Positions 9,049 through 57,597 of a stretch of DNA of 64,000 bases are shown here, one piece after another (the first letter of the stretch is position 1; every line of letters starts with the position of its first letter). Position numbers and translations under genes: made by a program. The DNA lies in sequence record PP856017.1, one strand, 5' to 3'. The notes under the pieces are model-generated. The model did no database searches and had not been told where the DNA came from. It worked only from the letters and a program-made list of their open reading frames with translations.

Positions 9049-9076
9049 CCTACTCTTGCCTTCGGGCAAGAGTAGG
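9049..9076 (+). terminator. Hairpin CCTACTCTTGCC-TTCG-GGCAAGAGTAGG, TATG at 9083
   Basis: Perfect 12-bp stem, UUCG loop, at convergent gene ends. Confidence 0.75.
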
Positions 9077-9096
9077 TAGGTCTATGCTTTTGCTGC

Positions 9097-9426
9097 CTAT
9101 AACGGCAACGATGAATCCGGCAGATCGCCGAAGATGATCTTGTCTTCGACGTCCATTTCGATCACGCGGTTGTAGATCACAAAGAAAATGAGCCACGCTG
9201 CCGCAATGAGAATTAGCGAGATGCCCGTTCGCCATTCGTGGTAAAAGATGCAAGCGATGCCGGCGACCACTGTCCAGAAGACAACCATGAGCGCCATGAC
9301 GTGAAAACCCGGCGAGTTCTTGTACCAGCTAAAGAGCAACGAATGCTCCTGATACATCAGTTGCTGAACCACCATGAAAAACGTGAAAGCGAAAAACAAC
9401 CAGAAGAAAACGTTAAGCACCCACAT
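9097..9426 (-). CDS. Small polytopic membrane protein (about 3 TM helices)
   Basis: ATG 9426 with GAGGTGG RBS; three hydrophobic stretches. Confidence 0.7.
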   Translation of the reverse strand: MWVLNVFFWLFFAFTFFMVVQQLMYQEHSLLFSWYKNSPGFHVMALMVVFWTVVAGIACIFYHEWRTGISLILIAAAWLIFFVIYNRVIEMDVEDKIIFGDLPDSSLPL

Positions 9427-9463
9427 GGTCCACCTCACTTTTGTTATTAAACGACGAAAAAAA

Positions 9464-9526
9464 AATACCAGATGATTAGTCTGGTATTAAAAGCTCCTAC
9501 ACTCGGGGAGAACCGAAGTAGGAGCT
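9464..9526 (-). terminator. Two tandem hairpins (9492-9526, 9464-9488) followed by U-tract
   Basis: AGCTCCTAC...GTAGGAGCT and AATACCAGA...CTGGTATT; A9 run on plus strand. Confidence 0.6.
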
Positions 9527-9536
9527 GGGCTACTGG

Positions 9537-9827
9537 TTAAGCCATTGCCTTCAGCATCAGACCAGCGCTCAGAACGACGCCCTTTTGAGCGCGTTCAATA
9601 GCGACAGCTGCCGCGCGTTCGGCATGTTCCGCTTCACGCATCGCCATACGTTGAGTAGCGACGTATTCGAGGACGCGCTTTTCTTCGCCGGCCGACAGGT
9701 TCTGACGTTCGACACGGAAGGTGATTTCGTCCCAATCCACTTGTTCAAACTTCTTGCCTTCCATGAACTTCTCGGAAAGATACAGGCAGAATTCGAGGAC
9801 GGTGACTTGATAAAGAGTGTTGTTCAT
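9537..9827 (-). CDS. Hypothetical protein
   Basis: 96 aa, GGAG RBS. Confidence 0.7.
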   Translation of the reverse strand: MNNTLYQVTVLEFCLYLSEKFMEGKKFEQVDWDEITFRVERQNLSAGEEKRVLEYVATQRMAMREAEHAERAAAVAIERAQKGVVLSAGLMLKAMA

Positions 9828-9873
9828 GATGATGCTCCTGAGGTTTGGAAAATTACACGGAAGGTGAAGTTTG

Positions 9874-10014
9874 TTACTTGGCCAGCTTGTCGGTCATGTA
9901 CCAGACCAAGGGGACGACGACGAACAGTGCGAATGCGACGAAGATTGCGATGTCTTGACGCTTGCTGTTCTTGACCTGATCGTTCGAACGTTTCAGCATT
10001 TGTTGCTTAGTCAT
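9874..10014 (-). CDS. 46-aa single-pass membrane protein (not in the ORF track)
   Basis: Read manually: MTKQQMLKRSNDQVKNSKRQDIAIFVAFALFVVVPLVWYMTDKLAK*; CAGGAAAA RBS. Confidence 0.65.
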   Translation of the reverse strand: MTKQQMLKRSNDQVKNSKRQDIAIFVAFALFVVVPLVWYMTDKLAK

Positions 10015-10058
10015 GATGTTTTCCTGTTGTTTGACTTTACTGCATTTTGATTAATCGG

Positions 10059-10523
10059 TTACTGCAGGGGAACACGCTTGCGGAAGGTATCGAACTGAAT
10101 CACGACGTACCCATCTTCGATTGTCACGTTCTTCACCCGCGCATCGCAAGTCCCGAATCCGTTTGCCTGGCGAACATCGCCATTGTTCAGGAACCAGAAC
10201 AACTGGTAATCCATCGCACAGCCTTGTTGATTGCCTGCAATCAGAACCAGCGGCGTGTTGCTGTAGGTTCCGTGCCATACGACTTTAATGCTGTCGTAGT
10301 TTTCGTTCATGTCAGTCACGTCTCCGTGATACTCCATGAACCAGGTACCCTGCTGGGTATCCTGATAGAAGCGTACCGTGTCCACGGTTTTCATGAGGAC
10401 AGGTTTGGCTTCTGCACCCGGTGCAGTCAGCACAAGGAGGGCGATGACAACTACTACCGACATCGCCCAGTAGATCCATTCATTGCGAATGTAGCTACGA
10501 ACTGCATTTTGAACAGCTTGCAT
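10059..10523 (-). CDS. Exported or membrane-anchored periplasmic protein with two Cys
   Basis: Hydrophobic segment ending AEA|K; GC...YQLF and FGTC motifs. Confidence 0.7.
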   Translation of the reverse strand: MQAVQNAVRSYIRNEWIYWAMSVVVVIALLVLTAPGAEAKPVLMKTVDTVRFYQDTQQGTWFMEYHGDVTDMNENYDSIKVVWHGTYSNTPLVLIAGNQQGCAMDYQLFWFLNNGDVRQANGFGTCDARVKNVTIEDGYVVIQFDTFRKRVPLQ

Positions 10524-10546
10524 TACGTCATCTCCAATACTACGTT

Positions 10547-10741: not shown

Positions 10742-10838
10742 AATGCGCCTCCGTTGAAAAGAATACAAAGTTCTTTATCCAACTTCACCGCAGTTATATG
10801 TGTTTGATTTATTCTAGGATTCGAAATTTGACGGCATA

Positions 10839-10867
10839 GGTAGAGGAGGGTTTTGCCCTCCTCTACC
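10839..10867 (-). terminator. Hairpin after ATPase gene, TATG immediately downstream (10838-10835)
   Basis: 12-bp stem GGTAGAGGAGGG/CCCTCCTCTACC. Confidence 0.72.
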
Positions 10868-10872
10868 GTAGC

Positions 10873-12186
10873 TTATGCTGCTTTCTTCAAACGTTCATTA
10901 CCACGTGCCGCGATCTCGGTCAGGAAATCGGAAAGCGATTCAGGATTCTCCTTGAACGCATTCTCGACTTCACAGCCCGGCAAACGGATATCCGAATTCA
11001 GGAAAGCCAGGACGCCCGGATGCGGTTGCAGGATCTTGTCATCCAGTTCGTACATCAGAGTGGCGTAAGCCCAGATCTCTTTTGTCCCGATCTCATCGAT
11101 CAGATATTCGTTATTGATGCGAGACTTGCGACGCACAGCCGAATCCAGATCATCCGGTCGGTTGGTCGTCATGAGAACGATGATATTGTCCAGTCCCACA
11201 ACGCCGTCGAATGCATTCAGGAATCCCGACATGGTCAGACAGTTCATGTCCATCACCATGTCAACAAGTTCTTTCTTCTTGTTTCGATCCTTGACTGCAT
11301 TACCTGCCTGATCCACATCTTCCATCAGAACGAATGAACCGGGTTTGATCTTCGCCAATGCATCGACGAGTGATGCATTCGTGTGATCGGTCAGATCGAT
11401 GACGTATAGATCTTTCTTGAAGTACGCAGCGAGCAACTTACACAGCGTGGTCTTGCCAGTTCCAGGAGGACCGAGGAAGAGGAACGATTCCTTGTAGGTC
11501 AAACCTTTCTTACGATACCAGTCTCGCCGGTTCGTGAACTCGGTGATCTTGTTCAGGATCTCAGCTTTGATATCTTCGTTCATGCAGAACGTGGAGATAT
11601 CGCGAAGCGGGACTTTGCCCACCTGTTCCCAGCTTTTGTTGGTGGCATCGAACTTGTGAATGAACACATCGTCCGCACCACCCTTTTTCGTATTGAACAG
11701 TTCGACCAGTTCCTGGAAAGCACTTTGCTTCCAGCCGAACGTGCGGAGCATGATTTCTTCTTTCTGCTTTTCCGAACCGCCACTTTCCAGTTTGCCTTTG
11801 TTGAACCAGAAGAACCGGCGTTTGTAAAAGAAGAAATGCCAACCATCGCCCACACCGAGCCGGTACGGTTTGTAAACCGTTTCATCTGCGAACATGTCGT
11901 CGCGATACTGACGGAACATGAAGAAGCTGCGACTGAATCTGCCATAGCCTGACTGCATGAACCATTTGTCGAACATGTTGTACGCATCCAAGTTACCATC
12001 GTAACCTGCATTGTTCAACCACATCGTCACGGTCGAATAGCTGACGATGAAATCCCAAACCTTCTTGGGAACATCTTTCATGAAATACATCAAGCCACCG
12101 ACAATCGGTAAAATCATCGTGGCGAGTAACGGATTGGCCTGAGTTGCAGCATTGTACTGTCGAAACACCTCGACGATCCAATTCAT
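10873..12186 (-). CDS. BCS1-like AAA+ ATPase with N-terminal TM anchor
   Basis: TM helix about aa 18-38; WY...G..YK..FLFLGPPGTGKT Walker A; VLMEDVD Walker B; TMSGFLNAFDG, MTTNRPDDLDSAVRRKSRI (SRH/Arg finger) as in Bcs1. Confidence 0.85.
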   Translation of the reverse strand: MNWIVEVFRQYNAATQANPLLATMILPIVGGLMYFMKDVPKKVWDFIVSYSTVTMWLNNAGYDGNLDAYNMFDKWFMQSGYGRFSRSFFMFRQYRDDMFADETVYKPYRLGVGDGWHFFFYKRRFFWFNKGKLESGGSEKQKEEIMLRTFGWKQSAFQELVELFNTKKGGADDVFIHKFDATNKSWEQVGKVPLRDISTFCMNEDIKAEILNKITEFTNRRDWYRKKGLTYKESFLFLGPPGTGKTTLCKLLAAYFKKDLYVIDLTDHTNASLVDALAKIKPGSFVLMEDVDQAGNAVKDRNKKKELVDMVMDMNCLTMSGFLNAFDGVVGLDNIIVLMTTNRPDDLDSAVRRKSRINNEYLIDEIGTKEIWAYATLMYELDDKILQPHPGVLAFLNSDIRLPGCEVENAFKENPESLSDFLTEIAARGNERLKKAA

Positions 12187-12251
12187 GGTACTTAACCCCT
12201 TTTAGTGTTATCAGAATAAATGTCGACCAAAGAAAAAAATATTCGACAAAG

Positions 12252-12288
12252 AGAGGAACCAGATACCCTCACGGGTACCTGGACTCTT
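12252..12288 (-). terminator. Imperfect hairpin plus U-tract
   Basis: AGAG..CCAG.TACCC/GGGTACCTGG.CTCT then T-run on minus strand. Confidence 0.55.
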
Positions 12289-12289
12289 C

Positions 12290-13066
12290 TTATTTTATTT
12301 TTGAAAGATCAAGATAGAACATCATCTTGTCGTCGGGCTTCGGGAAGAAGGCCTTGATTTTTCCAAGATAGTCTTTCTTATCGCTTCCGATCACCCGGGA
12401 GTAGAAACCTACTTCCAGAAGAACGCCACTGAACGGTTCTTCCTCGATGTTCACAAGTTCCTTGCGATCCATCGTCATGCGGTAAACCATTGGGTGGAGT
12501 TTCTCCAGAACGATAACGTTCTCTTCCAGATTGCTCTTGACGATTAAAGGCAGACTGATCTTGCCACCGTGCAACTGATGGCCATTGGCGTAACCCATAC
12601 CCAGACAGATTTGGGTGTTCGCCGTGTTGTAGCCAAACTCAGCTACGATCTCACGATCTTCTTGAATGAAGCGACTCATCACGTCCATACATCCGGACAG
12701 ATCGCGACGCAAGGTTTCCCCGAATTTTTGAATGCCCACGTCGTAGGGTTTCTTCTCCACGACACGAACTTCACCTGAGATCGGCTGAGACTCGATTACA
12801 GGCTCTACAACGGGTTGATATATCTTCGGTATAGCTGCGTAGGGCTTGACCCCTGGAACCGGGTCAGGGAGGCCACCAGGGACGATCGGCAGGCAGTATT
12901 CGTCATCCCAGTCACGATCCCCAGCTGCCGCCATTTTGTGGTCTGCATAATTCTTGGATCTTTTCACGGATTTTACTCCAGGTTGAAACATTGTAAAAGG
13001 AAACTGCAGGAATTCACGATGGTTATATGTTTCTGAAACAATCTGGAATTCCATCCTTTCAAACAA
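12290..13066 (-). CDS. Hypothetical protein
   Basis: 258 aa; start uncertain (TTG 13066 or ATG 13054). Confidence 0.68.
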   Translation of the reverse strand: MFERMEFQIVSETYNHREFLQFPFTMFQPGVKSVKRSKNYADHKMAAAGDRDWDDEYCLPIVPGGLPDPVPGVKPYAAIPKIYQPVVEPVIESQPISGEVRVVEKKPYDVGIQKFGETLRRDLSGCMDVMSRFIQEDREIVAEFGYNTANTQICLGMGYANGHQLHGGKISLPLIVKSNLEENVIVLEKLHPMVYRMTMDRKELVNIEEEPFSGVLLEVGFYSRVIGSDKKDYLGKIKAFFPKPDDKMMFYLDLSKIK

Positions 13067-13085
13067 TCACAACAGCATAGTTGCA

Positions 13086-13201
13086 AGACCAAGACACCCT
13101 TACGGATGTCCTGGTTCTCGCTGGGGGGATGAATGTGGTGTGTGATCCCTCCAGAGCATGGAGGGTCATCGTTTCTTTTTTACACGCCCCCACAGGCGTG
13201 T
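13086..13201. other. Three tandem hairpins (13086-13118, 13144-13167, 13182-13201); possible structured RNA or terminator cluster
   Basis: Inverted repeats read directly; TATG at 13079-13076 after the first on the minus strand. Confidence 0.45.
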
Positions 13202-13204
13202 CAT

Positions 13205-13345
13205 TCTTTTTCTTTCTTTCTTTCGAAAAATCACTATTAATGTAATTATTGTAAATACGTTAGTATTTACAATACTAACGTTTATAATACTAATTATAAA
13301 ATTCTCTCTACAAGGTTCTGATGACATTTAAAAAATTATTTATTT
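13205..13345. repeat. AT-rich region with interlocking inverted repeats (origin-like or regulatory)
   Basis: TATTGTAAATAC-GTTA-GTATTTACAATA (13247-13274), ACGTTAGTAT-TTACA-ATACTAACGT (13257-13281), TTTATAAT-ACTA-ATTATAAA (13281-13300); TTTC repeats upstream. Confidence 0.7.
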
Positions 13346-13444
13346 TAGTACCTGGAAAGGTACCCAGGACCCTCTTAAAAAATTCCAGGAAAGCACAGAT
13401 CATCTGACATCCGTTCCACATTCTTTCGCAAAGGACGACACGAA

Positions 13445-14535: not shown

Positions 14536-14544
14536 GGACGACGC

Positions 14545-16438: not shown

Positions 16439-16645
16439 GTGGATTATTACAGGAACTTCAAAATGTCGAACCGCCATAAAGGCCAGCATTTGATGCAGGC
16501 AAGCCTGAAGCAGCACAAAGAACATCACGTGAAAGATCTCTACATCGTCACGGAATCGGAACATCATGGCAAACATGTCACGAGTTCGGTTCATGTGAAG
16601 GTGGGTCGTGGTGGTCTGGAGCATGTCAAAAAGCAAACAGCATAA
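16439..16645 (+). CDS. Small His-rich basic protein
   Basis: 10 His in 68 aa; C-term TSSVHVKVGRGGLEHVKK aligns with upstream ORF; true start may be internal. Confidence 0.55.
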   Translation: MDYYRNFKMSNRHKGQHLMQASLKQHKEHHVKDLYIVTESEHHGKHVTSSVHVKVGRGGLEHVKKQTA

Positions 16646-16646
16646 C

Positions 16647-16676
16647 CCCTACACCAGACCGTGAGGTCTGGTGTAG
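16647..16676. terminator. Bidirectional hairpin with TATG on both sides
   Basis: CCTACACCAGACC-GTGA-GGTCTGGTGTAGG; TATG at 16679 (+) and 16644 (-). Confidence 0.78.
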
Positions 16677-16687
16677 GACTATGTCCG

Positions 16688-18868: not shown

Positions 18869-18904
18869 AGAGGATCTCCTAGCATAGGGTCATAAGGTTA
18901 GTGA

Positions 18905-18928
18905 TCGACTGGGCTTTCGCCCAGTCGA
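18905..18928 (-). terminator. Hairpin (GAAA loop) with TATG at 18894 upstream of terL
   Basis: 10-bp perfect stem TCGACTGGGC/GCCCAGTCGA. Confidence 0.7.
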
Positions 18929-18940
18929 CCTATCGCTTAA

Positions 18941-23272: not shown

Positions 23273-23297
23273 TTTTCGACGCCATAAAAAAAGGTTA

Positions 23298-23328
23298 CCC
23301 TACCCACCGGATTGGCCGGCAGGTAGGG
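23298..23328 (-). terminator. Hairpin with T-run and TATG (23286)
   Basis: CCCTACC...GGTAGGG. Confidence 0.65.
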
Positions 23329-24240: not shown

Positions 24241-24350
24241 TTTTTGCCACCTCTAAACATGTATTTTTTTATTGCCGTAGCCCGACAATAAAGGAATTGG
24301 TTTCGAAATAAACGTCATATCATGAACTCATTTTCTAAGGAAGGCTGACG

Positions 24351-27339: not shown

Positions 27340-27369
27340 CCACACTCGGAAAACAAAAAAAAATAAGCT

Positions 27370-27393
27370 CTCCTACCCCGCGAGGGGTAGGAG
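27370..27393. terminator. Bidirectional hairpin: TATG on + side (27399), U-tract on - side
   Basis: CTCCTACCCC-GCGA-GGGGTAGGAG. Confidence 0.78.
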
Positions 27394-27410
27394 GGTCTTA
27401 TGCCGTCGAC

Positions 27411-28740: not shown

Positions 28741-28766
28741 AGTGGGTCTACCCTCGTAGACCCATT
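28741..28766 (-). terminator. Hairpin plus U-tract
   Basis: TGGGTCTAC-CCTC-GTAGACCCA then T-run on minus strand. Confidence 0.65.
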
Positions 28767-29554: not shown

Positions 29555-29627
29555 GATTGTTCTCCGAAAGGAATTTTTGCCAAAAAAGATTTGATTGTAA
29601 ACCAGAGACTACAGAAACATAGCCCAC

Positions 29628-29659
29628 GCATAGATCCTGCCTTGCGGCAGGATCTATGC
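29628..29659 (-). terminator. 14-bp hairpin with TATG at 29621
   Basis: GCATAGATCCTGCC-TTGC-GGCAGGATCTATGC. Confidence 0.72.
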
Positions 29660-30814: not shown

Positions 30815-30822
30815 GTTATATA
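30815..30822 (-). promoter_or_regulatory. Early-promoter variant TATATAAC
   Basis: One mismatch to TATATTAC, in TCAAGC-ATATATAACAA context like other copies. Confidence 0.5.
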
Positions 30823-30846
30823 TGCTTGAAAATAATTAGAAAGCAT

Positions 30847-30877
30847 AATCTACAGGGGCTTTTGGCCCCTGTAGATT
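30847..30877 (-). terminator. Hairpin after protease gene, TATG at stem end
   Basis: AATCTACAGGGGC/GCCCCTGTAGATT 13-bp stem. Confidence 0.75.
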
Positions 30878-30887
30878 AGCATGACGA

Positions 30888-34135: not shown

Positions 34136-34178
34136 GTTGGATTCCTGTTAAAAAAGATGCTGATTTCTCGACAGACAT

Positions 34179-34207
34179 AAATGGGTGAGGACTGGCCTCA
34201 CCCATTT
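34179..34207 (-). terminator. Hairpin after vRNAP beta gene, TATG at stem end
   Basis: AAATGGGTGAGG/CCTCACCCATTT. Confidence 0.72.
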
Positions 34208-34218
34208 TTCGTTTCGGA

Positions 34219-37200
34219 TTACGAGTCGTATGCAGCCACTACCAGCTCTGCACCCTTCATCAGAATGGCAGTTGTCGTGCCACTGATATCAGGCGAATTC
34301 ACAATACGACGTGCAATCGACGTGTAGCTGAAGCGCCCAAGGATCTTCGTGCCGTCCTGGGCTTTCATGGGTTCTTTGATGACTTTGCCGATAATCGACT
34401 TCAGCTGGTTCACCAGAACAATCTTGTCACCCACGCCAGCAGGCTCCGGCCCAGTGATGTAGATACGAATTGCAACCGAGTCCAGAGGAATGGAATTCCC
34501 CTTAACCTTGAAGCCTTCGTCCACAGCACCAGTCACTACAGTCTTGTTGGCCGACTTTCGACGGTGTGCAATTTCACGGTCCGACGCAGAGACAATCTTC
34601 TTGATGCTCTCAGACATGTCTTCTTTGTCGCCGCGATAGAACACCTCGATGCGTTCAACTACGCCGTCGTATTTCGCTTTGGGAGCTTGAGAGCCGAGGG
34701 CTTTCAAACTATCAATGTCTGCTTCATCGTAGAGGTCGAGACCCGACGTGATCTCGTCCTGAATGATACACAGAACATCGTCATATTTGACTGCATCGCC
34801 AGTCTTGATCAGGCGAGCAATCTCCTGAGTGAACTTGACGATAATCGTCCGCTGTTTTGTCTGTTCGGTCATCAGCATGTCGGCCAGTTCCTGGGCGATC
34901 ACGCTTGCATCTTCAATGACGTCTGCAGGTTCGCACAGAGCGAAGTGGGCGTAAGTACCATTACACCACACAACCTGCCTCGGGTTCAGCGTATCGGGTT
35001 TGAAGAATCCCTTGTTGAAGGTAATTGCATCGCCTTCGGTAAACTTCGCACCCGCTTTGAGATTGGTCACGAGGGTATGCGGAATCGTCATCCCGGCGTT
35101 TTCACCGTACTGCCGTCCCAGCGGATAACCCTTGGTCGTACCGTCAGCGTACTGAACGGTAATGCCATGATCGGTAATTTCCTTGACCGTGCCTTTTTGC
35201 TTGGCGGTCACAGCGAAGAGTTCGCTCGTGCGGTGAGGAATCACGCGATCGTAACCTGTGCTCAGGATGTTTTCCATCTGACCGTTCACAGCCACACCGT
35301 GCTCATGTTGAATGGAAATAAAACCCATCCGCTTCATGTCGTCACGGGTAGCACCGGGGGAAGCCAGAACACTCGACGAGAAAATGGAACTCATCGAGAG
35401 ATCCTTTTCCTTCGGCGGTACAGGCATACCCAGTGTGTTGGTCAGCTGAGGATTCGGTGCCATGTAGGTGTTGATGCCGACTTCGCCCGAGTCCTTCGTA
35501 GCTTCAGAGATGATACCGATGTCGTTCTTCCCGTATTCACGGGTAGCGGCAGTCATGGTGTCTTTTGAACGACCACCTGCGCCAGTGAACGTGACTTCCT
35601 CACGCATCTTCAGGTTTGCAATCGGATTGATATCCTTCACCACGACAATCGACGGATCTTCAGCCAACGATTGCCAGATGGCAAAAGGTTTCATCTCGAT
35701 TGGGTAACGGCTCTTGCCAGGACGCGCGTTGTGGCTGCGCATCGACTTCACCAGTTCCTGGTAAACGGCACCTGCAATACGTTCGTAACCCTTGATGCGC
35801 ATTTCGCTCATGTCGAGTTCCGGACGATGCATGTCGTCCAACAGAAGTTCGGTTGCAAAGACCAGAATACCCATGAAGTCGGTCGGCTCCTTCAACTGGA
35901 GCAGCACATCCTTGGTGATCGGGTCGACGAACATGTCGCGAGCCAGCGTGATTTCACGCAGCACCCGAGTACCACCACCCGTCGTATCCAGAACGTTCTG
36001 ATAAACGCCCGGCTGATCGAAGTCCGTAATCGAGAAACCACGGATGATTCGACGGAATTCCTGGAAGCCGCCCAAGAGCAGACATGCAAGACGATCGTTC
36101 TTGGAGAAGAGCAGCGTTTCATCGCTAAACACCAGAGCCACTTCGTCAGGCTGTTGTTGAGTACGCGTACCAACAGGCACACGACGAGTCTTGATCTTCA
36201 GACGCTTGATTAGTTCAGTCAGACCGTAATCCCAGGCGAGAATCATACCAATCGGCACGTACTTACCAGCGATCTTGATCTCGACGAATTCAGCCGGCAT
36301 GCCCGACATATCCAGACCGAGGATTTCTTCCATCTCTCCGAGAGGCTTAACTGCCTCACCCGAGATCAGGTAGAAGCTGTCGCCTTCGTAGTAGATTATT
36401 TTGCGTTTGTCGCTGATGGCAATCGGCACGAACCCCTTATCGATCCAGGGTTGAACCACGGCCATGTTGAAGTTCTCATCGATCTTCGAGAGATCGAGGT
36501 GGAAGACAAAGCTTTCGCCTTCAGTGGTCTTCAGCGTGAACTCCTTGATCTGGTGCGCAAGCGCCGAGATCGATCGAGGAGCCTTGATGTCCATGTGGAA
36601 GACATTAGCGGTCTTGACGTCCGTCACGATGTCGATCGAGTTATCGAAACCCAACGACATGACTTCGTTGATCAGCCATTGCTGGTAATCATTCACAGCT
36701 TTGCGGCTACGGTAGATGAAGAACTTACCGTAGTAGCTCGTAATCGCCACGCGATTCGGTGCCACCTTACGGATCGGGAAGTCGCCGCGCTGATTACGCA
36801 TTGCATACTTCACGCCGTTAGCCGTGTACGTACCGTCTTCCTGAATCTCAGGGATTGGGAAACGCAGTGTGGTCGGTGCACCTTCAACAGGCACGATGCG
36901 AGCAACGAAGTTGTTGTTCGAACCCTGAATCGTCTCAGTCCTTTCGACTTCGAGGTGATCCAACATCACGTTCGCAGACTGAACGTGGGTGATCATCTTG
37001 AGCACGTGCTTGTTCAGCGTATGCTTGATGTAGGTTTGCTGGCTCTTTTCGATGGATGAATGCAACATCGACTCATCCACGACCACAGCGTTAGGCGCCA
37101 CGACGTGTTTGGTATCGACCTTGATCTCGTCCGGATGGATTTCCATCGCATCGACCAGAGTTCCCTTCCCGCCGAACGGATGAGGAATAGTTTTGTACTT

Positions 37201-46300: not shown

Positions 46301-46515
46301 ACATCATGAAGCAAGGTCTCAAGGAATCCCAATCACAGACTGCATTGCTCAGCCGTATTGCGGATAGCATGGATAAGCTCACTGCTGCTTTGACTCAAGG
46401 CGGTGGTGCACCAGCAGCTCCTGCAGCACCCACTGAGCAGAATAACTACGGCAAGCCTGCCGCTCCCATGACGGCGCCGTCATTGGGATTCCGTCGCACA
46501 CTTGCTGGAGCATAA
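40327..46515 (+). CDS. Tape-measure/tail lysozyme protein (phiKZ gp181-like) with GH19 domain
   Basis: 2062 aa; N-term DLDFDIPDF; GH19 motifs HESG.F...ENLNY, YRGRGPLQITGKSNY; lambdoid TMP motif FAKGG...GEAGPEAIMPL. Confidence 0.88.
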   Translation: MASKKKGGRNDFDFDSDLDFDIPDFGGDNPEAVKKDRKPIATGMKSAAAGFGKTFANEARLRKTLTKSLPKEYEEPISKAFEIKDGARDLYNTTATQAGEILRETKRSVGRIARNLDSALPKKLSDKLKAWGDSADSDSSGSMSKSEIEQGTIDSAFASIFAQTQQAQADNQKKQDAKAIIQDQIDTKRHKDMTQILGSIDNSLLSLTTFQDKISTNYMKKSLELQFRSYFVQNDMLQLQVKFFDQFKTDLQAITKNTGLPDYVKKAPKEALMELMRQKTFDSLASTLSRKRSQWMSGVFKKAGKKVTDVLGNVREGLSTVLDTAESGTSMYGSGMGPSGAEMAGDLVGGFAGGKAQDAIAKRIRAAMLKNPKAVKHGNKLAQVFGGLPQWVGNELENGKYADKIPEWLKEILKPEGESSSVNLSREVDLDRAARWSEKSARSLNIVIPDLLSKIHHELYVSRTGDVKSKPLAYDYEKGKFVQNKDRQSQLADTIVSGKTKEATKHQIDSIFKEIDPEGTKIHPKARQAIAERIYGANKDNVYFNRENMLSHRVIGDHDGAREAIQEYIEKDPSGANERRLSRMFGNVGAHNGEVKDVVQSLIDQGRHGELADMGILDLKTGRINMDMIRKMELGHGFGGGNKTPNRPQTHTGQGIEGGGAAGEDTIFSAFGNIFSGGNVKAFAKGGVFSNKVVNRPTAFPMKNGKTGVMGEAGPEAIMPLSRDEKGRLGVKVAKGKTEKVVEEIRDILKRFEAKGFGGGMMDPEMLEAYLSGKVQDAKGFFGRGGALARKGVFGAGKALWTGAKNSFDRTKRMGKTLTGWATSGGSSALDWLGKQKDKFDLYIGNEVEPRLSRAKLEAGKYIDEATGKVIEKYEDIKGNVKDIDTGEIVLRASELKDGILKNFETGKSVLLRLTGWGKSAIKTSMDRLKKTIATATGFSKSVYGLAWTGVKKAYEQLTDAPQDVYLKDQYETPVLLKRIMEQGLYFDKATLDPITKVSQIKGPVVDNEENVLITKEDLARGLYDKEGKEIKTGFDKIAQFVGNSIKGTLATYKKILGKGKDLGMKAMGWLKGLFGFDSPFTVFSSRTNDILTAMYAMLNDRLPGERSPELDSMIGKSGSGSTGQTVKKAGKAATAFKQGFMSRWRKGKDQAQGKLDELKERLPGDIDRAKHMAREAHRDASDKVNEWKDEHWDPAEQAVREKLGRGKDRVVDGLHAVVDTLRERLPDKKAKLEGDSDGDGVRDGSIDDIRKKRAAAKAEKEKEKEEAEKTAEKGSSKGAFAALASFFKKKKGEDDEKDDDHSLLGDILGSGGGKEVEKEGGKVAKKASRWSKMMPKGKGIGSRLLRGGMKVAGGAAKLGLKFGGALLGGGLLSAETLLGGLSLVGSALGMAGTALAAVVSSPVTVPLLLAAGVGAAGYFAYKWLTKPDPQPIEKVRLVQYGFKANDTDAYKKMKSLEQQLAGAVVFKGENAEFDPKKVDLQAAMKIYGLDPSSKSDATKFVAWFANRFRPIYLLHRALIKTSQSPKPLEDVDSNKPDFKKSYLEQCSFPGDHYNIPTNPIKDKDYLPSSKFSVDQQIKIALDEVAKEGTKKEDNKGAAAPAAAGGVAAAAMAKNEADKKKFEEDQKKNNANLTPMQKDPKHDVDKQQAFNRLQAATVGANAAPGGPGRAPGDPVTGPSGPNGQAKPAKSKPGVKPMSGAAELVKQTLLKDMPKYGITSPNQQAALLGNIEHESGFQPISENLNYKPSQLMKLWPNRFPTETQAQQVASQGPQGIANNIYGGRMGNTDANDGWDYRGRGPLQITGKSNYAAVSKAMGKDIVNDPDKLITDPQAAADSALAYWKLNPALGKNADAGNFQKVRQMINGGGIGADDANARVQSYLDKIKNGELSVGGSSSGAGGTVTPTGMVDSPKPSTPNSIDNNPNTGPVPDAYKQAGKATSSTSPAQLVSSPRPSFDSSAGGGSPLTSSSPAPSQNSFVRQNTQLNTGDSMDIMKQGLKESQSQTALLSRIADSMDKLTAALTQGGGAPAAPAAPTEQNNYGKPAAPMTAPSLGFRRTLAGA

Positions 46516-46524
46516 GCGAAAGAG

Positions 46525-46554
46525 ATACACGAGAGGCGACGGCCTCTCGTGTAT
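46525..46554 (+). terminator. Hairpin with TATG at 46557
   Basis: ATACACGAGAGGC-GACG-GCCTCTCGTGTAT. Confidence 0.75.
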
Positions 46555-46588
46555 TTTATGATCTGTATTTTCCAATTTAGGAGTCACG

Positions 46589-48484: not shown

Positions 48485-48494
48485 TGAACATACA

Positions 48495-48524
48495 TACACT
48501 ACCTGCCCTAGGGCAGGTAGTGTA
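48495..48524. terminator. Bidirectional hairpin with TATG on both sides
   Basis: TACACTACCTGCCC-TA-GGGCAGGTAGTGTA; TATG at 48534 (+) and 48492 (-). Confidence 0.75.
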
Positions 48525-48532
48525 GTGTGTCT

Positions 48533-49711
48533 TTATGACGAGGGATGACCTTCTTCTGCTGCACTGACCATACCGGCAAACCAGTCGTCGTCTGGAGACT
48601 GTACGCGCGGATCCACATCACGCGTTACCATGTTTGAACCGGTCGAGACGGATTGCGGGAAACGCTTCTTGATCTCATCGTCCACTGAGTAGGAGTTATT
48701 CAGGGCAGAGAGAGCAGCGTAGGTTTTATCGGCCGAATCGGTAGAAGTAATTCCACCGGTCGTGAAGATATTCTTCACCTGAACAGAAGCACCCAGCAAA
48801 GACGAGAGGTCTTTAAAGGTGGTGTTCGTGCCCACAGGCTGGAAAGAAGACTGATTCCAGGTCGGGTCGATTTTCTGATACGTTCCCTGGTACTGAACGA
48901 ATTGTCCATTCGCACCAGTGATGTCCGTCGTCGTATACGACGTCTTATCGTTTCGAGCCAGCTGAGACACGGCATTGGGCTGCAGCATTCCAACCGCACC
49001 ATTACCGATATAGTCAGACATAGCTGCAACAGAAGCCAGATCTCCGCGCGCGACTGCTGCTGGCAAAGAGCCTGTTGCAACAGTGTAGAGCATCGAACTT
49101 TTGTTCACAATGCTGGAAGAACTCTGGACTGCGTCAGCAATGACTCCAAAAGCTCCCTGAATGCCCTGTGCGCCTGCTTCGCCAACGAGTGAGGAGAATA
49201 CCCCACCGAGAGCTCCGTTGGCGCTGAGAGCGATTCCGACCTTCCCAGTGACGGCATTGATTGTATTGGCAATACCACGCAGATCTGAGAGGTTGCCAGT
49301 TTGTACTGCCCGAACAATGCCATTCACAGTCGTATAGACACGTGAGGCTTCTTTCAGTAGTCCGGTAACAGAATTCACATCGCTCTTGATGGCGGAGATA
49401 GCAGATTGACTGCCGCTCACTACATCGTTCACGAGTGATTTAGCTTTCGCGTATTCGTCCGAGAAAGCAGAAGAGATTTTGTCAGTCAACGACTCCGTGT
49501 CGAGACTCAGTGCGCCATCGGTGGCTGACTTCAGTACATTGCCTGAAGTGAATTTGCTCAAGAACCCGAACTGGTCGGATAGATCGAATCCCGTGAGATT
49601 CAGATCCTGAAAACTGTTGACGACGGAAGAGTCTGTCTTTGTGTAGACGTCTGCGACAACGGTTTTCTCATCCGGTGTCCGGCTAAGAATACTTGTTGCT
49701 AAAGTCGGCAT
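48533..49711 (-). CDS. Ser/Thr/Ala-rich probable virion protein
   Basis: Start ATG 49711 (GGTGA RBS); 392 aa. Confidence 0.62.
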   Translation of the reverse strand: MPTLATSILSRTPDEKTVVADVYTKTDSSVVNSFQDLNLTGFDLSDQFGFLSKFTSGNVLKSATDGALSLDTESLTDKISSAFSDEYAKAKSLVNDVVSGSQSAISAIKSDVNSVTGLLKEASRVYTTVNGIVRAVQTGNLSDLRGIANTINAVTGKVGIALSANGALGGVFSSLVGEAGAQGIQGAFGVIADAVQSSSSIVNKSSMLYTVATGSLPAAVARGDLASVAAMSDYIGNGAVGMLQPNAVSQLARNDKTSYTTTDITGANGQFVQYQGTYQKIDPTWNQSSFQPVGTNTTFKDLSSLLGASVQVKNIFTTGGITSTDSADKTYAALSALNNSYSVDDEIKKRFPQSVSTGSNMVTRDVDPRVQSPDDDWFAGMVSAAEEGHPSS

Positions 49712-49755
49712 CGCATCACCAAGAAAAAAATATAGGTCACAACATAAGCAGATTC

Positions 49756-49787
49756 CTGACATCGTAACCCGTAGGTTACGATGTCAG
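49756..49787 (-). terminator. 14-bp hairpin with TATG at 49746
   Basis: CTGACATCGTAACC-CGTA-GGTTACGATGTCAG. Confidence 0.72.
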
Positions 49788-49798
49788 TATCCATAGAA

Positions 49799-50948: not shown

Positions 50949-51479
50949 TCATTCGCCAAAGTGAAGAAGTAATGCATCGAGGAATTCCGTCAGCGTCTGT
51001 GTGTATTTGTACAGTTGCCGATGGTTGTATTCCATTGAGCCATAAAGTTCCTTGTCGGCATTCTTCATGTACTCATGATAGGCGTCGATCAGCTCTACTG
51101 CTCTCTGGATCTTCACCGCTGCATCATCCACGTAGTAGCCTTCGTGGACAAAGAGGAAGTTATCGAATCGGACACTCTTTACGTTCCTCACGAAAAAGAG
51201 GCCTTGCTCTATGTGTTTCTTTTCTTTGATGTGGTCATTGACCTCCAGGAGTGATTTAATGAAGTCCGGCAAATTCTCAGAGAAGTTTTCGATTCTTCCT
51301 AGAGAAGCCGGCGACTTGGAAAGATGAAGTTCGGTTGTTCCGATGCGACCTAACGCAATCTCCAACTGCGTATAGACACTCTCCGGATCAGCTTTAACCT
51401 CCTCTTCCTTTACGGGGGCAGGATCTCTCTTGCCTCGCAAATAGCCGAACAGTCGCTGTATCATGTGATCTTCATTCAA
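50949..51479 (-). CDS. Hypothetical protein under an early-type promoter
   Basis: 176 aa; TATATTAC at 51507-51514. Confidence 0.68.
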   Translation of the reverse strand: MNEDHMIQRLFGYLRGKRDPAPVKEEEVKADPESVYTQLEIALGRIGTTELHLSKSPASLGRIENFSENLPDFIKSLLEVNDHIKEKKHIEQGLFFVRNVKSVRFDNFLFVHEGYYVDDAAVKIQRAVELIDAYHEYMKNADKELYGSMEYNHRQLYKYTQTLTEFLDALLLHFGE

Positions 51480-51506
51480 TGGATGTTCCAGACATAGATC
51501 CTAATT

Positions 51507-51514
51507 GTAATATA
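51507..51514 (-). promoter_or_regulatory. phiKZ-type early promoter core TATATTAC
   Basis: Exact consensus in TTTAAAAC...TCAGAC-ATATATTACAA context, matching the phuZ copy. Confidence 0.65.
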
Positions 51515-51543
51515 TGTCTGAGCTGTTTTAAAGGAGAAACATC

Positions 51544-51981: not shown

Positions 51982-52772
51982 TCGGGTTTCCGGAATTTCT
52001 CCAGCTTCTTATCCAGTTCATCAATCGAGATGTGCTTGGATACGTCCACTGCGTCTTGCGCCAAAATCCGTTCATCCGGATAGACGATTGAGAAGTTTTC
52101 CACGTTGATAAATTTCAGGCAAATCCTAGAGGCCAATGCGGCCTCTAGGAGCGCCAGGCTATTTATGCCGCGCTTCAGATGTTCGATGACTTCTTCGTCT
52201 TTATCCGGATCCATGTTGAAGTACACCATTGGTGCAATCAGCATGAGATACGGCTTGGGCTCTTTGATCAGAGCGTTGCTGTGGGTGTTCAGATACTCGT
52301 CATAATTGTACATGACCATCATGACGTAGTTTTCGAAGCAGTGGGTGGGTGTGAGTTCTTCGAGCGGTTTGCTCATCACGTTCACACCGATTGCTCCACG
52401 TACCTGCAAGTAGATGAGACTGCGCAGGTAAGCCATTTCGTCTGCCTGCAAGACATACGGCCAGACATTCACATCCAGCTGAGGCTTCTGGTGATGAGGG
52501 AGTTCATGTGCAATCGACTCCTTCATGATCTCCGAGATTTGAGGACGCAGGAACTGGAAGATGTTGGTCACCATCGAGGCTTGCAGGGTTTCGACTTCGT
52601 ACTTCTTGTACATCTCGTCGTATGCTGTTTTCTCGATACCTTCGAAGAAGTCACCCTTACGGCGATGGTAACCATTCTTCACGAGTTCCTTTGCTGCTTC
52701 CGGATTGAGGCGGTTAATCACGCCATAGCGGCAATCCAGGACCGAGTTGATATCGACGTAGAAGCTTTTCAT
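51978..52772 (-). CDS. Conserved phiKZ-like protein with HAD-like N-terminal motif
   Basis: FYVDINSVLDCRYG; 264 aa. Confidence 0.65.
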   Translation of the reverse strand: MKSFYVDINSVLDCRYGVINRLNPEAAKELVKNGYHRRKGDFFEGIEKTAYDEMYKKYEVETLQASMVTNIFQFLRPQISEIMKESIAHELPHHQKPQLDVNVWPYVLQADEMAYLRSLIYLQVRGAIGVNVMSKPLEELTPTHCFENYVMMVMYNYDEYLNTHSNALIKEPKPYLMLIAPMVYFNMDPDKDEEVIEHLKRGINSLALLEAALASRICLKFINVENFSIVYPDERILAQDAVDVSKHISIDELDKKLEKFRKPD

Positions 52773-53283: not shown

Positions 53284-53309
53284 GACTACCTGGCTCTCGC
53301 CAGGTAGTC
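53284..53309 (-). terminator. Hairpin after vRNAP beta C-terminal subunit gene
   Basis: GACTACCTGGC-TCTC-GCCAGGTAGTC. Confidence 0.65.
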
Positions 53310-54483: not shown

Positions 54484-54547
54484 GATTCCACAATCCCTTA
54501 AAACCCCGAAAATTGATAGTTCTTCTCAATATATCGAAGCATAAAAA

Positions 54548-54572
54548 GGAGAGCGGAACCAATCCGCTCTCC
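54548..54572 (-). terminator. Hairpin with T-run and TATG (54543) after uvsX
   Basis: GGAGAGCGGA-ACCAA-TCCGCTCTCC. Confidence 0.72.
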
Positions 54573-54576
54573 GGTT

Positions 54577-55998: not shown

Positions 55999-56092
55999 TC
56001 ATTTGAAATGAAGAATGCGTGAGTCAAACTATGGGTTTTTTCATTAAAAAATATAGTTCGTCTCTTTAGTTTTTGTCCCTAGCGAGATAACC

Positions 56093-56971
56093 ATGGACCA
56101 AATTTTCCAGTCGAACATCTATTCGGATCGGGAGCCAGACCAGAACATGGTCCGGATGAACTCGTTGTTCCTCGACCTGATCTCAACCTCCGGTTACTGT
56201 GACTGCCAGTCGATGCCGCTGAAGCAGTACTTCGGCGACTTCTACACCAAGGCACGTTTCTCGGTGGAGAATACGTTCGACAAATTCCTTTCCAGTGCTC
56301 CGATCGAGCTGCGTCCGGCAAAGGTGTTCGAGCGTTTCGTGAGTACCAATCCGTACGCGGACATCATCCAGTATCGCGCTGAGATCCCCGAGGGTCTCAT
56401 CGTGCCGTATCTGGATTACCTGAAGGTTCTGATTCCCGCTCAGGAGTCGGCGAACCTCATCATCAAGGACGTAATCGATCCGTTCAGCACGTTCGTCTCG
56501 AAGATGATCTCGGACGAAATCTTCCGCAATCAGGCAGGCCATCAGATCAAGGAGTTCGCTAAACTTGAACCTGAATATGTCAGGATCAACAAGGAATTCG
56601 CCAAGTGCTTCGGCAAGAACGACTTCCGTGCATCCGCGGCATTCGGTGAAGTCGTGAAGCGAAACGGTGACTGGCGTGAAGTGTTTGCTGAAACGGCGAA
56701 CCTGAAGAAGCTCTATCAGGCATACCCGATTCAGGACCTCACCAAGAAACTGAACCGCCTGTACGAAATGCTCGACGAACTCGTCGATCAGATCAAACTC
56801 GATCACTACGAGCAGGTGGAGAAGGAAGTCACGCAACTGCTGGGTAACGGCATGTACTTCGTGGCGAAGATGGTGGAACTGTCCGCACTGACAACCTTCC
56901 GTAGCCGCACCTTCATCGAGGCGATCAACACCACGGTGAAGAATGTTGAAGAACTGCCCAACGTGAAGTAA
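56093..56971 (+). CDS. Virion (head) protein, phiKZ gp153-like
   Basis: 292 aa; IPEGLIVPYLDY motif; divergent from uvsX as in relatives. Confidence 0.62.
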   Translation: MDQIFQSNIYSDREPDQNMVRMNSLFLDLISTSGYCDCQSMPLKQYFGDFYTKARFSVENTFDKFLSSAPIELRPAKVFERFVSTNPYADIIQYRAEIPEGLIVPYLDYLKVLIPAQESANLIIKDVIDPFSTFVSKMISDEIFRNQAGHQIKEFAKLEPEYVRINKEFAKCFGKNDFRASAAFGEVVKRNGDWREVFAETANLKKLYQAYPIQDLTKKLNRLYEMLDELVDQIKLDHYEQVEKEVTQLLGNGMYFVAKMVELSALTTFRSRTFIEAINTTVKNVEELPNVK

Positions 56972-56999
56972 AGCAGCAAAAAAAAATAAACAGATTGAT

Positions 57000-57029
57000 C
57001 CATACCGGTGGCCTAGGCCACCGGTATGG
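57000..57029. terminator. Bidirectional hairpin: TATG on + side (57031), U-tract on - side
   Basis: CCATACCGGTGGCC-TA-GGCCACCGGTATGG. Confidence 0.75.
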
Positions 57030-57039
57030 TTATGTCTCT

Positions 57040-57498
57040 CTAATTGTCGGCCACTTCAATTGGCTGGTTCTTGGCAAAGCGTGCCAAAACCTGCTCTTGT
57101 CTGATCTTCGATGCAGCCTGACGGACTTTACGCACATAGCGTGGGTCGCCTGGGTTGTACATCGCGATAGCGCGGTCCATGTTACCAGAGCGCTGCAGAT
57201 TCCTGGAAAGCAGCGTTGCTCCAAATTGCACGTTTGTGCAGGCCTTGAAAAGGTCTTTTGCGTATATTTTCTTTTTCCTCAGTTCGGGGAGATGGATAGA
57301 ATTGATTTGCATGAGCCCGTAACTGACGGACCCGTTTCTGTCGTGGTGAACCGCTTTGGGGTTCCCAGTACTTTCGACTCTGATGATGGCGCGCAGGTCC
57401 ATTTCTTTCAGGCCGTTCTGCTTTGCAATGTCGGCGATGCAGTCTGCATGCGCGAATTGGAAGAGGCTCAGGAGGAGAGCTAAGATAAATAACCGCAT
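57040..57498 (-). CDS. Sec-exported lytic transglycosylase (SLT; IagB/VirB1-like)
   Basis: Signal peptide ...AHA|D; AIIRVES (catalytic Glu), GLMQIN, AIAMYN. Confidence 0.88.
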   Translation of the reverse strand: MRLFILALLLSLFQFAHADCIADIAKQNGLKEMDLRAIIRVESTGNPKAVHHDRNGSVSYGLMQINSIHLPELRKKKIYAKDLFKACTNVQFGATLLSRNLQRSGNMDRAIAMYNPGDPRYVRKVRQAASKIRQEQVLARFAKNQPIEVADN

Positions 57499-57564
57499 TG
57501 TTTCCCTTCTTATAACGGTGGTTTTAAAAAGTACTACAAGCGCTACAACTACACGACAACATAA

Positions 57565-57597
57565 ACCATCCTACCCCCTTGTGAGGAGTAGGATGGT
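57565..57597 (-). terminator. Hairpin with TATG at 57563
   Basis: ACCATCCTAC...GTAGGATGGT. Confidence 0.68.

Follow-up and report, generated by a model that had tools for sequence, protein, structure and literature searches.

The window analysed here, a stretch of 64,000 nucleotides, comprises bases 1-64000 of Burkholderia phage vB_BgluM-SURPRISE13 (PP856017.1), a phiKZ-like jumbo phage whose nearest kin belong to the genus Chiangmaivirus. The annotation of SURPRISE13, which includes a tubulin-like (PhuZ) protein, a putative nuclear shell protein and split RNA polymerase beta genes, together with the presence of a homolog of phiKZ gp123 and its Chiangmaivirus kin, places it among the phiKZ-like, nucleus-forming jumbo phages with their own multisubunit RNA polymerases. 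Phages of the genus Chiangmaivirus are candidates for the biocontrol of Burkholderia glumae and Ralstonia. A distant DNA search returned no relatives outside 11 Chiangmaivirus-level records, and the comparative analysis therefore rests on about three lineages. The hairpins of the window were compared across four phages, SURPRISE13, RSL2, RSF1 and FLC6 (~82% nucleotide identity). Searches of the window against Rfam yielded nothing at gathering scores, and no transcriptome was found in the literature for SURPRISE13, RSL2, RSF1 or the FLC phages.

Stem-loops followed by the tetranucleotide TATG recur between the genes of the window (Table 1). A sequence-only reading had listed 18 such positions, and the succession of a stem-loop and TATG was confirmed at all of them, with predicted folding energies of -27 to -34 kcal/mol and z-scores of -3.8 to -6.7 relative to shuffled sequences. 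When the window was scanned without bias for hairpins with no fewer than 9 Watson-Crick pairs, no more than one mismatch and a loop of 3-9, 23 strong ones emerged between genes, 14 of them with TATG on at least one side; adding the imperfect hairpins at 13079 and 23286, which the scan missed, reaches the 16 of about 25 hairpins that had been claimed. The five convergent junctions in that list were also recovered, with TATG on both sides at two of them (16648 and 48495). A generic scan for hairpins followed by T-runs overlooks most of the sites, among them 9049 +, 10839 -, 16648 on both strands, 18903 - and 27368 +.

Table 1. Intergenic hairpin elements in the window, with their flanks, putative roles and conservation.
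Coordinates	Strand	Hairpin	TATG and flank	Assignment	Remarks
1436..1461	-		TGGTCGATAC, no TATG	hairpin after gene 003	
9049..9086	+	9049-9076 (12 bp, UUCG loop)	TATG 9083-9086	putative terminator of gene 012, convergent junction	hairpin and TATGC kept in FLC6 and RSF1
9464..9488	-		canonical T-run, no TATG	hairpin after gene 014	
10835..10877	-	10839-10867	TATG 10838-10835 (CTATGCCGTCAAAT)	putative terminator of gene 018	+ strand TATG 10874-10877 overlaps the gene 018 TAA stop codon; stem with compensatory substitutions; TTATGCCGTCAAAT invariant in 4 phages; ATATAAC promoter-like motif 35 nt downstream
12259..12282	-		T-rich TTCCTCTCTTTGTCG, no TATG	hairpin after gene 019	
13076..13121	-	13083-13121 (imperfect)	TATG 13079-13076	no annotated incoming gene	12 compensatory cells
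16641..16683	both	16648-16677	+ TATG 16680-16683; - TATG 16644-16641	putative bidirectional terminator, convergent genes 025 / 026 (terminase)	palindrome extended by CATAA...CTATG; 14 compensatory cells; + side CTATGTCCGTCAATAAA invariant; - side TTGTG in RSL2
18891..18930	-	18903-18930 (sense RNA loop GAAA)	TATG 18894-18891	putative terminator of gene 027	
23283..23328	-	23298-23328	UAACCUUUUUUUAUGGCGUCG (T-run + TATG 23286-23283)	putative terminator of gene 029	
27350..27402	both	27368-27395	+ TCTTATGCCGTC (TATG 27399-27402); - canonical CTTATTTTTTTTT tract	putative bidirectional terminator, genes 031 / 032	+ flank is TATTTTTGCCGTC in FLC6, RSL2 and RSF1
28741..28766	-		TTTTTTATC, no TATG	hairpin after gene 033	
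29618..29659	-	29628-29659	CATAG...CTATG in outer stem; second TATG 29621-29618	putative terminator of gene 034	in-stem TATG conserved; outer TATG only in SURPRISE13
30844..30878	-	30846-30878	TATG 30847-30844	putative terminator of gene 036 (head maturation protease)	followed by ATATAAC motif at 30821
34176..34209	-	34177-34209	TATG 34179-34176 (TTTATGTCTGTCG)	putative terminator of gene 040 (RNA polymerase beta-like subunit)	
46523..46560	+	46523-46556	TATG 46557-46560; TAAGCGAAAGAG upstream	putative terminator of gene 042	9 compensatory cells; TATGAT conserved
48489..48537	both	48495-48524 (palindromic CTAG loop)	+ TATG 48534-48537; - TATGs at 48496 and 48492	putative bidirectional terminator, genes 043 / 044	
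49743..49789	-	49754-49789 (sense RNA loop UACG)	TATG 49746-49743	putative terminator of gene 045	6 compensatory cells, 0 broken
53284..53309	-		TGTCGTACC, no TATG	hairpin after gene 051	
54540..54572	-	54548-54572	UUUUUAUGC (TATG 54543-54540)	putative terminator of gene 053	
56980..57034	both	56998-57031	+ TATG 57031-57034; - TTTATTTTTTTTT tract	putative bidirectional terminator, genes 054 / 055	13 compensatory cells; + flank is GTT-TGTCTCT in FLC6 and RSL2
57560..57597	-	57565-57597	TATG 57563-57560 (TTTATGTTGTCG)	putative terminator of gene 056	GTTTGTG in relatives where SURPRISE13 has TTTATG
62649..62678	+	sense RNA loop GAAA	no TATG	hairpin after gene 061	

The association between hairpins and TATG is not a product of base composition. 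Within the 20 nt downstream of intergenic hairpins in the window, TATG ranked first among all 4-mers, and it was present in 18 of the 46 3' flanks against 3.7 expected from the intergenic background (p=7e-9). Over the whole genome TATG was again the most enriched 4-mer, and the count rose to 57 of 148 flanks, with 10.8 expected (p=9e-27). As controls, hairpins lying within genes presented TATG on either side in 1 of 23 cases in the window, and the genome-wide figure for hairpins in coding sequence was 4 of 78. The enrichment likewise survived against a composition-matched null: a strong fold in the 44 nt upstream (MFE at or below -15) was found for 70 of the 161 intergenic TATGs, versus 7-35 for the 11 remaining arrangements of these four bases, and this control revealed no enrichment of TATG in intergenic DNA away from hairpins. 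The repeated hairpin-then-TATG signals are hence real.

The orientation of the signal with respect to the neighboring genes was equally distinctive. At co-directional junctions across the genome, TATG was detected in 26/53 sense flanks versus 7/53 antisense flanks, and its frequency was highest in convergent flanks (22/34, versus 2/8 in divergent ones). The presence of TATG was associated with a gene coming in from the hairpin side (odds ratio 7.1, p=5e-7), such an incoming gene being found at 48 of the 57 TATG flanks, but not with a gene going out in the direction of TATG (odds ratio 1.7, p=0.13); where there was an incoming gene, TATG was no more frequent in flanks that also had an outgoing one. 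Fourteen hairpins in the genome carry TATG on both sides. The elements do not therefore present the arrangement of a late promoter, upstream of a gene and pointing toward it, and are instead placed as terminators would be, downstream of a gene and in both directions between convergent genes. Of the hairpins located after an incoming gene, only around one half have TATG, the remainder showing T-runs or neither. Gene class was considered as the distinction between the TATG and T-run types and discarded, as both follow structural genes and interchange between relatives.

The stems span 9-18 bp and constitute the stable, G+C-rich stem-loops of phiKZ-type terminators, with a CTAC...GTAG outer stem common to 19 of the 66 elements. 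Among 4-nt loops at co-directional junctions, GNRA or UNCG tetraloops were identified in 24/34 cases when read in the sense RNA and in 3/34 when read in the antisense RNA. Counted from the end of the stem, the G of TATG is found 4-8 nt downstream at 47 of the 48 sites, which is the position that a proximal U-tract would occupy. The extended motif can be written as a hairpin plus YTTATGYY(GTC), in agreement with the phiKZ-type flank YTTAT(G/T)YYGT directly after the stem; in the position counts over the 48 sites, in which TATG itself is fixed by site selection, pyrimidines occupy position -1 in 40, +1 in 38 and +2 in 45, and GTC is weaker. Sense flanks are richer in T than antisense flanks (0.48 versus 0.36), and the sequence-only reading was correct in that most sites lack a clean U-tract: the uninterrupted tract of a canonical intrinsic terminator (~5-8 nt) is wanting, with runs of at least five T in only 5 of 48 TATG flanks.

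Comparison across the four phages indicated that these elements are maintained. All 16 window hairpins hold their position in RSL2, RSF1 and FLC6, with 107 double-sided compensatory cells, and TATG is retained at most of the window sites. At three of them (27399 +, 57031 + and 57563 -) the relatives read TTTTTG, TTTG or TTTGTG instead. Judged by eye from the alignments, TATG is fully conserved at 9/10 co-directional window sites versus 4/7 convergent flanks; this conservation goes beyond simple U-richness and so leaves room for a second function, which TATG could have besides termination. The element at 13079 closes a conserved 390-nt non-coding region, and therefore probably terminates a transcript or leader that the annotation lacks. 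TATG was also evaluated as the start codon of a small ORF, and rejected, because the conserved GTC downstream falls in differing frames and no ribosome-binding site precedes it, the hairpin being directly upstream.

Elements of this kind have been mapped experimentally in related phages. In phiKZ, 61 terminators determined by ONT-cappable-seq have the motif BCCYCCCCHWWDGGGRRGGBYTTATKYYGT in common (Putzeys et al. 2024, PMC10914365), and ARNold classes the sites of this motif as intrinsic terminators (PMC10914365). A strongly similar "motif A" is present in 59 terminators of 201phi2-1, and eight terminators of this phage were validated in vivo: when cloned, they blocked a downstream reporter in host cells free of infection, and hence with the host RNA polymerase (PMC11512511). 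The hairpin analysis reproduced the signal in phiKZ (100-150 kb), with TATG in 19/54 flanks versus 4.2 expected and flanking the hairpin on both sides where genes converge, and in Ralstonia phage FLC4-3B (20/70 flanks versus 2.2 expected, rank 1). SPN3US and Vibrio phage pVa-21 presented T-runs and no TTATG flank, and the 50 kb of AR9 contained too few G+C-rich hairpins for TATG to be compared.

The SURPRISE13 elements share with the phiKZ and 201phi2-1 terminators a G+C-rich stem-loop followed by YTTAT(G)YY(GT), their location at gene 3' ends, bidirectionality between convergent genes and an abundance of dozens per genome. In contrast with those of phiKZ, their stems are longer (10-16 bp) and not of the C-run/G-run type, many having CCTAC...GTAGG outer pairs, and the G of TATG is almost fixed where the phiKZ consensus has K. 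They also differ from both sets in being known from sequence alone, and in that T-runs take the place of this flank in roughly half of the terminators. With canonical bacterial intrinsic terminators they have in common a stable hairpin, a U-rich 3' flank, stable tetraloops and an A-rich 5' flank at bidirectional sites, but their U-tract is short and broken by A and G. These data support, with a probability of roughly 0.85, that the hairpin-TATG elements are factor-independent (intrinsic) terminators, representing the Chiangmaivirus form of a conserved phiKZ-type terminator, and we infer that SURPRISE13 transcripts end at these sites. According to this model, the nascent RNA of the incoming gene would fold into a stable, G+C-rich stem-loop, usually capped by a GNRA or UNCG tetraloop, and a short U-rich stretch with interruptions, Y-U-U-A-U-G-Y-Y, would come 0-4 nt after the stem in place of a long U-run. 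At convergent junctions a single hairpin would serve both directions, flanked either by two TATGs, which form a CATA...TATG palindrome, or by TATG on one side and a T-run on the other. The sequence-only reading had considered a phage-specific terminator; the sequence evidence and the mapped phiKZ and 201phi2-1 motif uphold the terminator, but its phage specificity is unsupported, since the eight cloned 201phi2-1 terminators stop transcription in uninfected host cells.

The same four bases constitute the late promoter of phiKZ, which is read by the non-virion RNA polymerase (nvRNAP) with G as +1, and in which TATG is needed in vitro and single substitutions strongly lower activity (PMC4666361). 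Both sequences also favor a pyrimidine before TATG. This would allow a dual-use cassette, in which the hairpin would end the upstream transcript and the adjoining TATG would restart transcription, generating antisense RNAs at convergent junctions. The apparently higher conservation at co-directional sites noted above agrees with such a promoter, as do a distance of 14-147 nt from TATG to the next start codon, plausible for a 5' UTR, and the hairpin-free, outward-facing YTATGTCTG motifs that are conserved in four phages within the divergent region 51465-51543. Nonetheless, we regard it as quite unlikely. The SURPRISE13 elements follow genes rather than preceding operons, TATG frequency is set by the incoming and not by the outgoing gene and peaks at convergent junctions, and the hairpin to which TATG enrichment is confined is absent upstream of the phiKZ late promoter P119L. 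Moreover, at three window sites relatives tolerate A-to-T replacements (TATG to TTTG) and T-runs in its place, against the strong loss of activity seen in the phiKZ promoter. The major head operon and the tail sheath gene of SURPRISE13 have no TATG upstream on the relevant strand, and at five junctions across the genome, of which 10799 and 30821 lie in the window, the element is succeeded by a distinct ATATAAC promoter-like motif. The antisense late RNAs proposed from sequence for the convergent junctions thus find no support.

A different link between both uses of TATG would run through the polymerase itself. In phiKZ gp123, a pocket under the beta-lobe binds the non-template bases T-3 A-2 T-1 G+1 (PMC12809450), and an elongating nvRNAP might capture non-template TATG in this late-promoter pocket and halt beside the hairpin, the tetranucleotide thereby replacing the U-tract and perhaps allowing the enzyme to be recycled. 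Terminator flank and late promoter would then share TATG by way of a single nvRNAP pocket (gp123 in phiKZ, gene 124 in SURPRISE13), and the signal for pausing or termination could possibly extend to recycling or re-initiation. The tetranucleotide stands in the place of the proximal U-tract, and the TTATG flank is present in phiKZ, 201phi2-1, Chiangmaivirus and FLC4-3B and absent from SPN3US and pVa-21, a distribution that fits a lineage-specific property of the polymerase. In gene 124, the gp123 homolog identified with tblastn (28% identity), 7 of the 16 residues of the pocket are retained. SURPRISE13_233 was also examined as a gp123 homolog and set aside; it contains a Cys/His cluster near the N terminus and is not gp123-like. 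Weighing against the proposal, conservation of the pocket is partial (Y399H, Y406I and K190D), the pocket is reported not to be complete in the transcribing complex (PMC12809450), TATG is interchangeable with T-runs in relatives and the 201phi2-1 terminators function with the host enzyme. We consider this halting mechanism improbable, and the shared pocket it presupposes about as doubtful. Among the papers searched, none was found to link terminator TATG with the late-promoter TATG of nvRNAP.

Explanations other than transcription signals were weaker. A role in RNA processing or stability, with the hairpin guarding a 3' end cut by an endonuclease in the UAUG tract, would account for the selection that acts on the structure of the sense RNA, and processed and terminated ends look alike in sequence; yet the ARNold calls for the phiKZ motif (PMC10914365) and the blocking of a reporter by cloned 201phi2-1 terminators, which is not expected from processing alone (PMC11512511), make it very unlikely. 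The elements are, furthermore, inverted repeats with a recurrent outer stem, as a cruciform, a recombination or packaging signal or a dispersed mobile repeat could be. Such a DNA-level role is extremely improbable, given that stem sequences differ among sites and covary across phages, that tetraloop and flank asymmetries are strand-specific and track gene direction, and that the elements reside at gene 3' ends.

The putative terminators described here are of an already known kind, that of phiKZ and 201phi2-1, now extended to SURPRISE13, and the phiKZ terminator signature reaches two more lineages, while two others lack it. The terminator tract holds exactly the four bases bound by the phiKZ nvRNAP at late promoters, which sharpens the question of mechanism. 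Were the pocket of this polymerase indeed involved, the U-tract would have been replaced in one chimallivirus lineage, comprising phiKZ, 201phi2-1, Chiangmaivirus and FLC4-3B, and not in SPN3US or pVa-21. For the annotation of Chiangmaivirus genomes, the motif provides marks of putative transcription-unit boundaries at about 48 sites per genome.

Bases 1-64000 of PP856017.1, the 227,647 bp genome of Burkholderia phage vB_BgluM-SURPRISE13 (hereafter SURPRISE13), are identical to the window, and the genome annotation, which includes a putative nuclear shell protein, a tubulin-like (PhuZ) protein and split RNA polymerase beta genes, is that of a phiKZ-like jumbo phage. Relatives at ~82-83% nucleotide identity comprise RSL2, RSF1, FLC6, FLC8, FLC4-4C, FLC4-5C, FLC4-11C and RsoM3USA, of which RSL2, RSF1 and FLC6 are assigned to the genus Chiangmaivirus.

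A stem-loop followed by TATG was recovered at all 18 window positions listed by the sequence-only reading, and the listed hairpins fold at -27 to -34 kcal/mol (z-scores -3.8 to -6.7). A hairpin scan of the window, blind to that list, yielded 23 strong intergenic hairpins, and TATG ranked first among the 4-mers in their 20-nt 3' flanks (18/46 versus 3.7 expected from the intergenic background, p=7e-9); among intragenic hairpins of equal strength, TATG was present on either side in 1/23. The enrichment extended to the whole genome, where counts assembled piecewise from five loci gave TATG in 57 of 148 hairpin flanks versus 10.8 expected (p=9e-27) and, for coding-sequence hairpins, in 4/78. It also withstood a composition-matched null, with a strongly folding upstream segment at 70 of 161 intergenic TATGs and at 7-35 for the eleven remaining orders of the same four bases. 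After subtraction of hairpin-associated copies, no over-representation of TATG was detected in SURPRISE13 intergenic DNA.

Each hairpin flank was sorted by its neighbouring genes before TATG was tallied (see table). The presence of an incoming gene, transcribed toward the flank, was associated with TATG (odds ratio 7.1, p=5e-7), and no association was found between TATG in hairpin flanks and an outgoing gene (odds ratio 1.7, p=0.13); in flanks with an incoming gene, TATG was no commoner when an outgoing gene was also present. This dependence on the incoming and not the outgoing gene is the behaviour of a terminator, unlike that of a promoter. Alignment of 48 incoming-gene flanks on TATG outlined a Y-TATG-Y-Y consensus followed by a weaker GTC. 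The G of TATG lies 4-8 nt past the last paired base at 47/48 sites, so that TATG stands in the position of a proximal U-tract. A clean U-tract is mostly absent, as the sequence-only reading had noted, since runs of at least five T occur in 5/48 TATG flanks and a standard hairpin-plus-T-run scan missed most of the elements.

Terminators of this design have been mapped in related phages. ONT-cappable-seq assigned most predicted-intrinsic terminators to phiKZ, defining at 61 sites a stem-loop followed by TTAT (5'-BCCYCCCCHWWDGGGRRGGBYTTATKYYGT-3'), and reported six bidirectional terminator regions between convergent phiKZ genes (PMC10914365). The motif of 59 terminators in phage 201phi2-1 strongly resembles that of phiKZ (PMC11512511). 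As a positive control, we applied our own pipeline to phiKZ 100-150 kb, which revealed the same design (e.g. GGGAAGGC-TTTATGTCGT and GGACTCTC-TTATGTTGTT), with TATG in 19/54 flanks versus 4.2 expected and on both sides at convergent junctions. The mapped motifs and this control place the window element in a known terminator class, and we consider it highly probable (about 0.85) that the hairpin-TATG elements are intrinsic terminators, the Chiangmaivirus form of the phiKZ type. The TTATG flank was also top-ranked in Ralstonia phage FLC4-3B (20/70 versus 2.2 expected) and partly present in phage EL, where TTAT ranks first (TATG 7 versus 2.3). The same flank analysis found no TTATG flank in SPN3US or Vibrio phage pVa-21, which use T-runs. 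Among the nucleus-forming jumbo phages examined, the TTATG type occurs in Pseudomonas, Ralstonia and Burkholderia phages and the plain T-run in Salmonella and Vibrio phages.

Features of the stem-loop and its conservation bear on the same reading. At co-directional junctions, 4-base loops are GNRA or UNCG in 24/34 sense transcripts and in only 3/34 antisense, indicating that the hairpin functions as RNA in the sense direction. All 16 window hairpins analyzed are found at the same position in RSL2, RSF1 and FLC6, and the alignments present compensatory stem substitutions (107 double-sided compensatory cells). TATG is kept at most sites in these relatives, but is replaced by TATTTTTGCCGTC at 27399+, by GTT-TGTCTCT in two relatives at 57031+ and by GTTTGTG in all three at 57563-. 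Incoming-gene hairpins lacking TATG often carry a T-run starting TTAT (e.g. CTTATTTTTTTTT at 27368-). Single TATG substitutions strongly lower the activity of the phiKZ late promoter (PMC4666361), and the exchange of TATG for T-runs is more in keeping with a function as U-tract than as promoter.

Stems throughout the genome (e.g. 9049, 16648, 27368, 48495, 53284, 57565, 62649) carry CTAC in the 5' arm and GTAG in the 3' arm, an arrangement present in 19/66 intergenic stems versus 2/71 coding hairpins, with the reverse in 2/66; CCTACC-type stems also occur in EL and SPN3US terminators. Directly 5' of many hairpins lies a TAA(A/G)CGA(A/G)AGA motif, often including the stop codon, which on the opposite strand reads as a T-rich tract (TCTTTCGTTTA). 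Within CDS 049 (- strand) lies an 11-bp hairpin (52124-52150), followed on the + strand, after 11 nt, by TTTATGCCG; gene 048, which is convergent, may have its terminator here, inside the coding sequence of the adjacent gene.

Hairpin flanks with TATG by junction type, and coordinates of associated sequence features
Feature	Position	Strand	Flanks with TATG
Co-directional junction, sense direction			26/53
Co-directional junction, antisense direction			7/53
Convergent junction			22/34
Divergent junction			2/8
Regions upstream of major head operon without TATG	PP856017 127720-127831, 128474-128702	-	
ATTTCA-N3-4-ATAT(A/T)AC-N4-5-GTGA	window 8194, 10799, 13028, 30821, 51513	-	
ATTTCA-N3-4-ATAT(A/T)AC-N4-5-GTGA, further copies	PP856017 226357 and others		
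TAA(A/G)CGA(A/G)AGA	window 46513-46525, 34210-34220, 62638-62650; PP856017 91855, 101530, 180346		

The element at 13079 is the sole window element for which no incoming gene is annotated. It ends a 390-nt gene-free region (13055-13444), strongly conserved (minus strand) in RSL2 and RSF1, that contains, besides an AT-rich palindrome, three hairpins on the minus strand, of which the hairpin-TATG itself is the last. The most likely role of this element is to end a transcript or leader missing from the annotation, and terminators within 5' UTRs have been reported in phiKZ; a small RNA gene or an origin may lie in the region. Conservation does not extend to the ATG annotated as the start of gene 019 (13054), and the coding sequence annotated for this gene has an ATATAAC motif at 13028. 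The true start of gene 019 looks to be at a conserved GGAG-N7-GTG near 12975.

The late promoter of phiKZ is TATG, with G at +1 (PMC4666361), and the sequence-only reading had proposed antisense late promoters at convergent junctions as its alternative to termination. Its terminator half is upheld by the incoming-gene link and the phiKZ/201phi2-1 motif; the antisense-promoter half is not supported, given that TATG tracks the incoming gene, shows no link to the outgoing one and is exchanged for T-runs in relatives. The model phiKZ late promoter, P119L, is located in a divergent region and has no hairpin upstream. No TATG was found on the relevant strand at the equivalent SURPRISE13 position, between the DnaB-like helicase gene and the major head operon, nor upstream of the tail sheath gene on that gene's strand, and the late promoter of the genus may differ from TATG. 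TATG promoters may exist in SURPRISE13, since divergent regions (51465-51543) carry a conserved, outward-facing YTATGTCTG with no hairpin, yet they would not be the source of the hairpin-flank enrichment. Re-initiation at the TATG of co-directional junctions is possible. A different promoter-like motif, ATATAAC-N4-5-GTGA, lies ~25-40 nt past hairpin-TATG at five junctions genome-wide (10799 and 30821 in the window).

The extended form of this motif has 23 genome copies, 14 of them intergenic and nearly all of these oriented toward the downstream gene, including copies upstream of gene 011 (tubulin-like, PhuZ) and gene 235 (putative nuclear shell). It resembles the early promoter of phiKZ read by the virion polymerase, the AT-rich TATATTAC. 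Gene 029 and the tail sheath gene are separated by a divergent region (24241-24350) that is 100% identical in four phages ~82% identical overall, an unusual degree of constraint for a regulatory region.

A 2026 structure describes a pocket under the beta-lobe of the beta-like subunit gp123 that binds four non-template bases (PMC12809450). Possibly, elongating non-virion RNA polymerase binds non-template TATG in this promoter pocket and pauses beside the hairpin, which would explain the use of UAUG over mere U-richness. The gp123 homolog in SURPRISE13 (gene 124, 28% identity) keeps 7/16 pocket residues, with changes H185Y, Y399H and Y406I, lending this idea weak support at best. Against it, TATG is interchangeable with T-runs, and host polymerase suffices for 201phi2-1 terminators: eight mapped ones, not sorted by motif, blocked transcription from one reporter gene to the next in uninfected Pseudomonas chlororaphis (PMC11512511), so a phage polymerase is not needed for terminators of that phage. 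Among the papers searched, none connects the TTATG of terminators with the TATG of late promoters.
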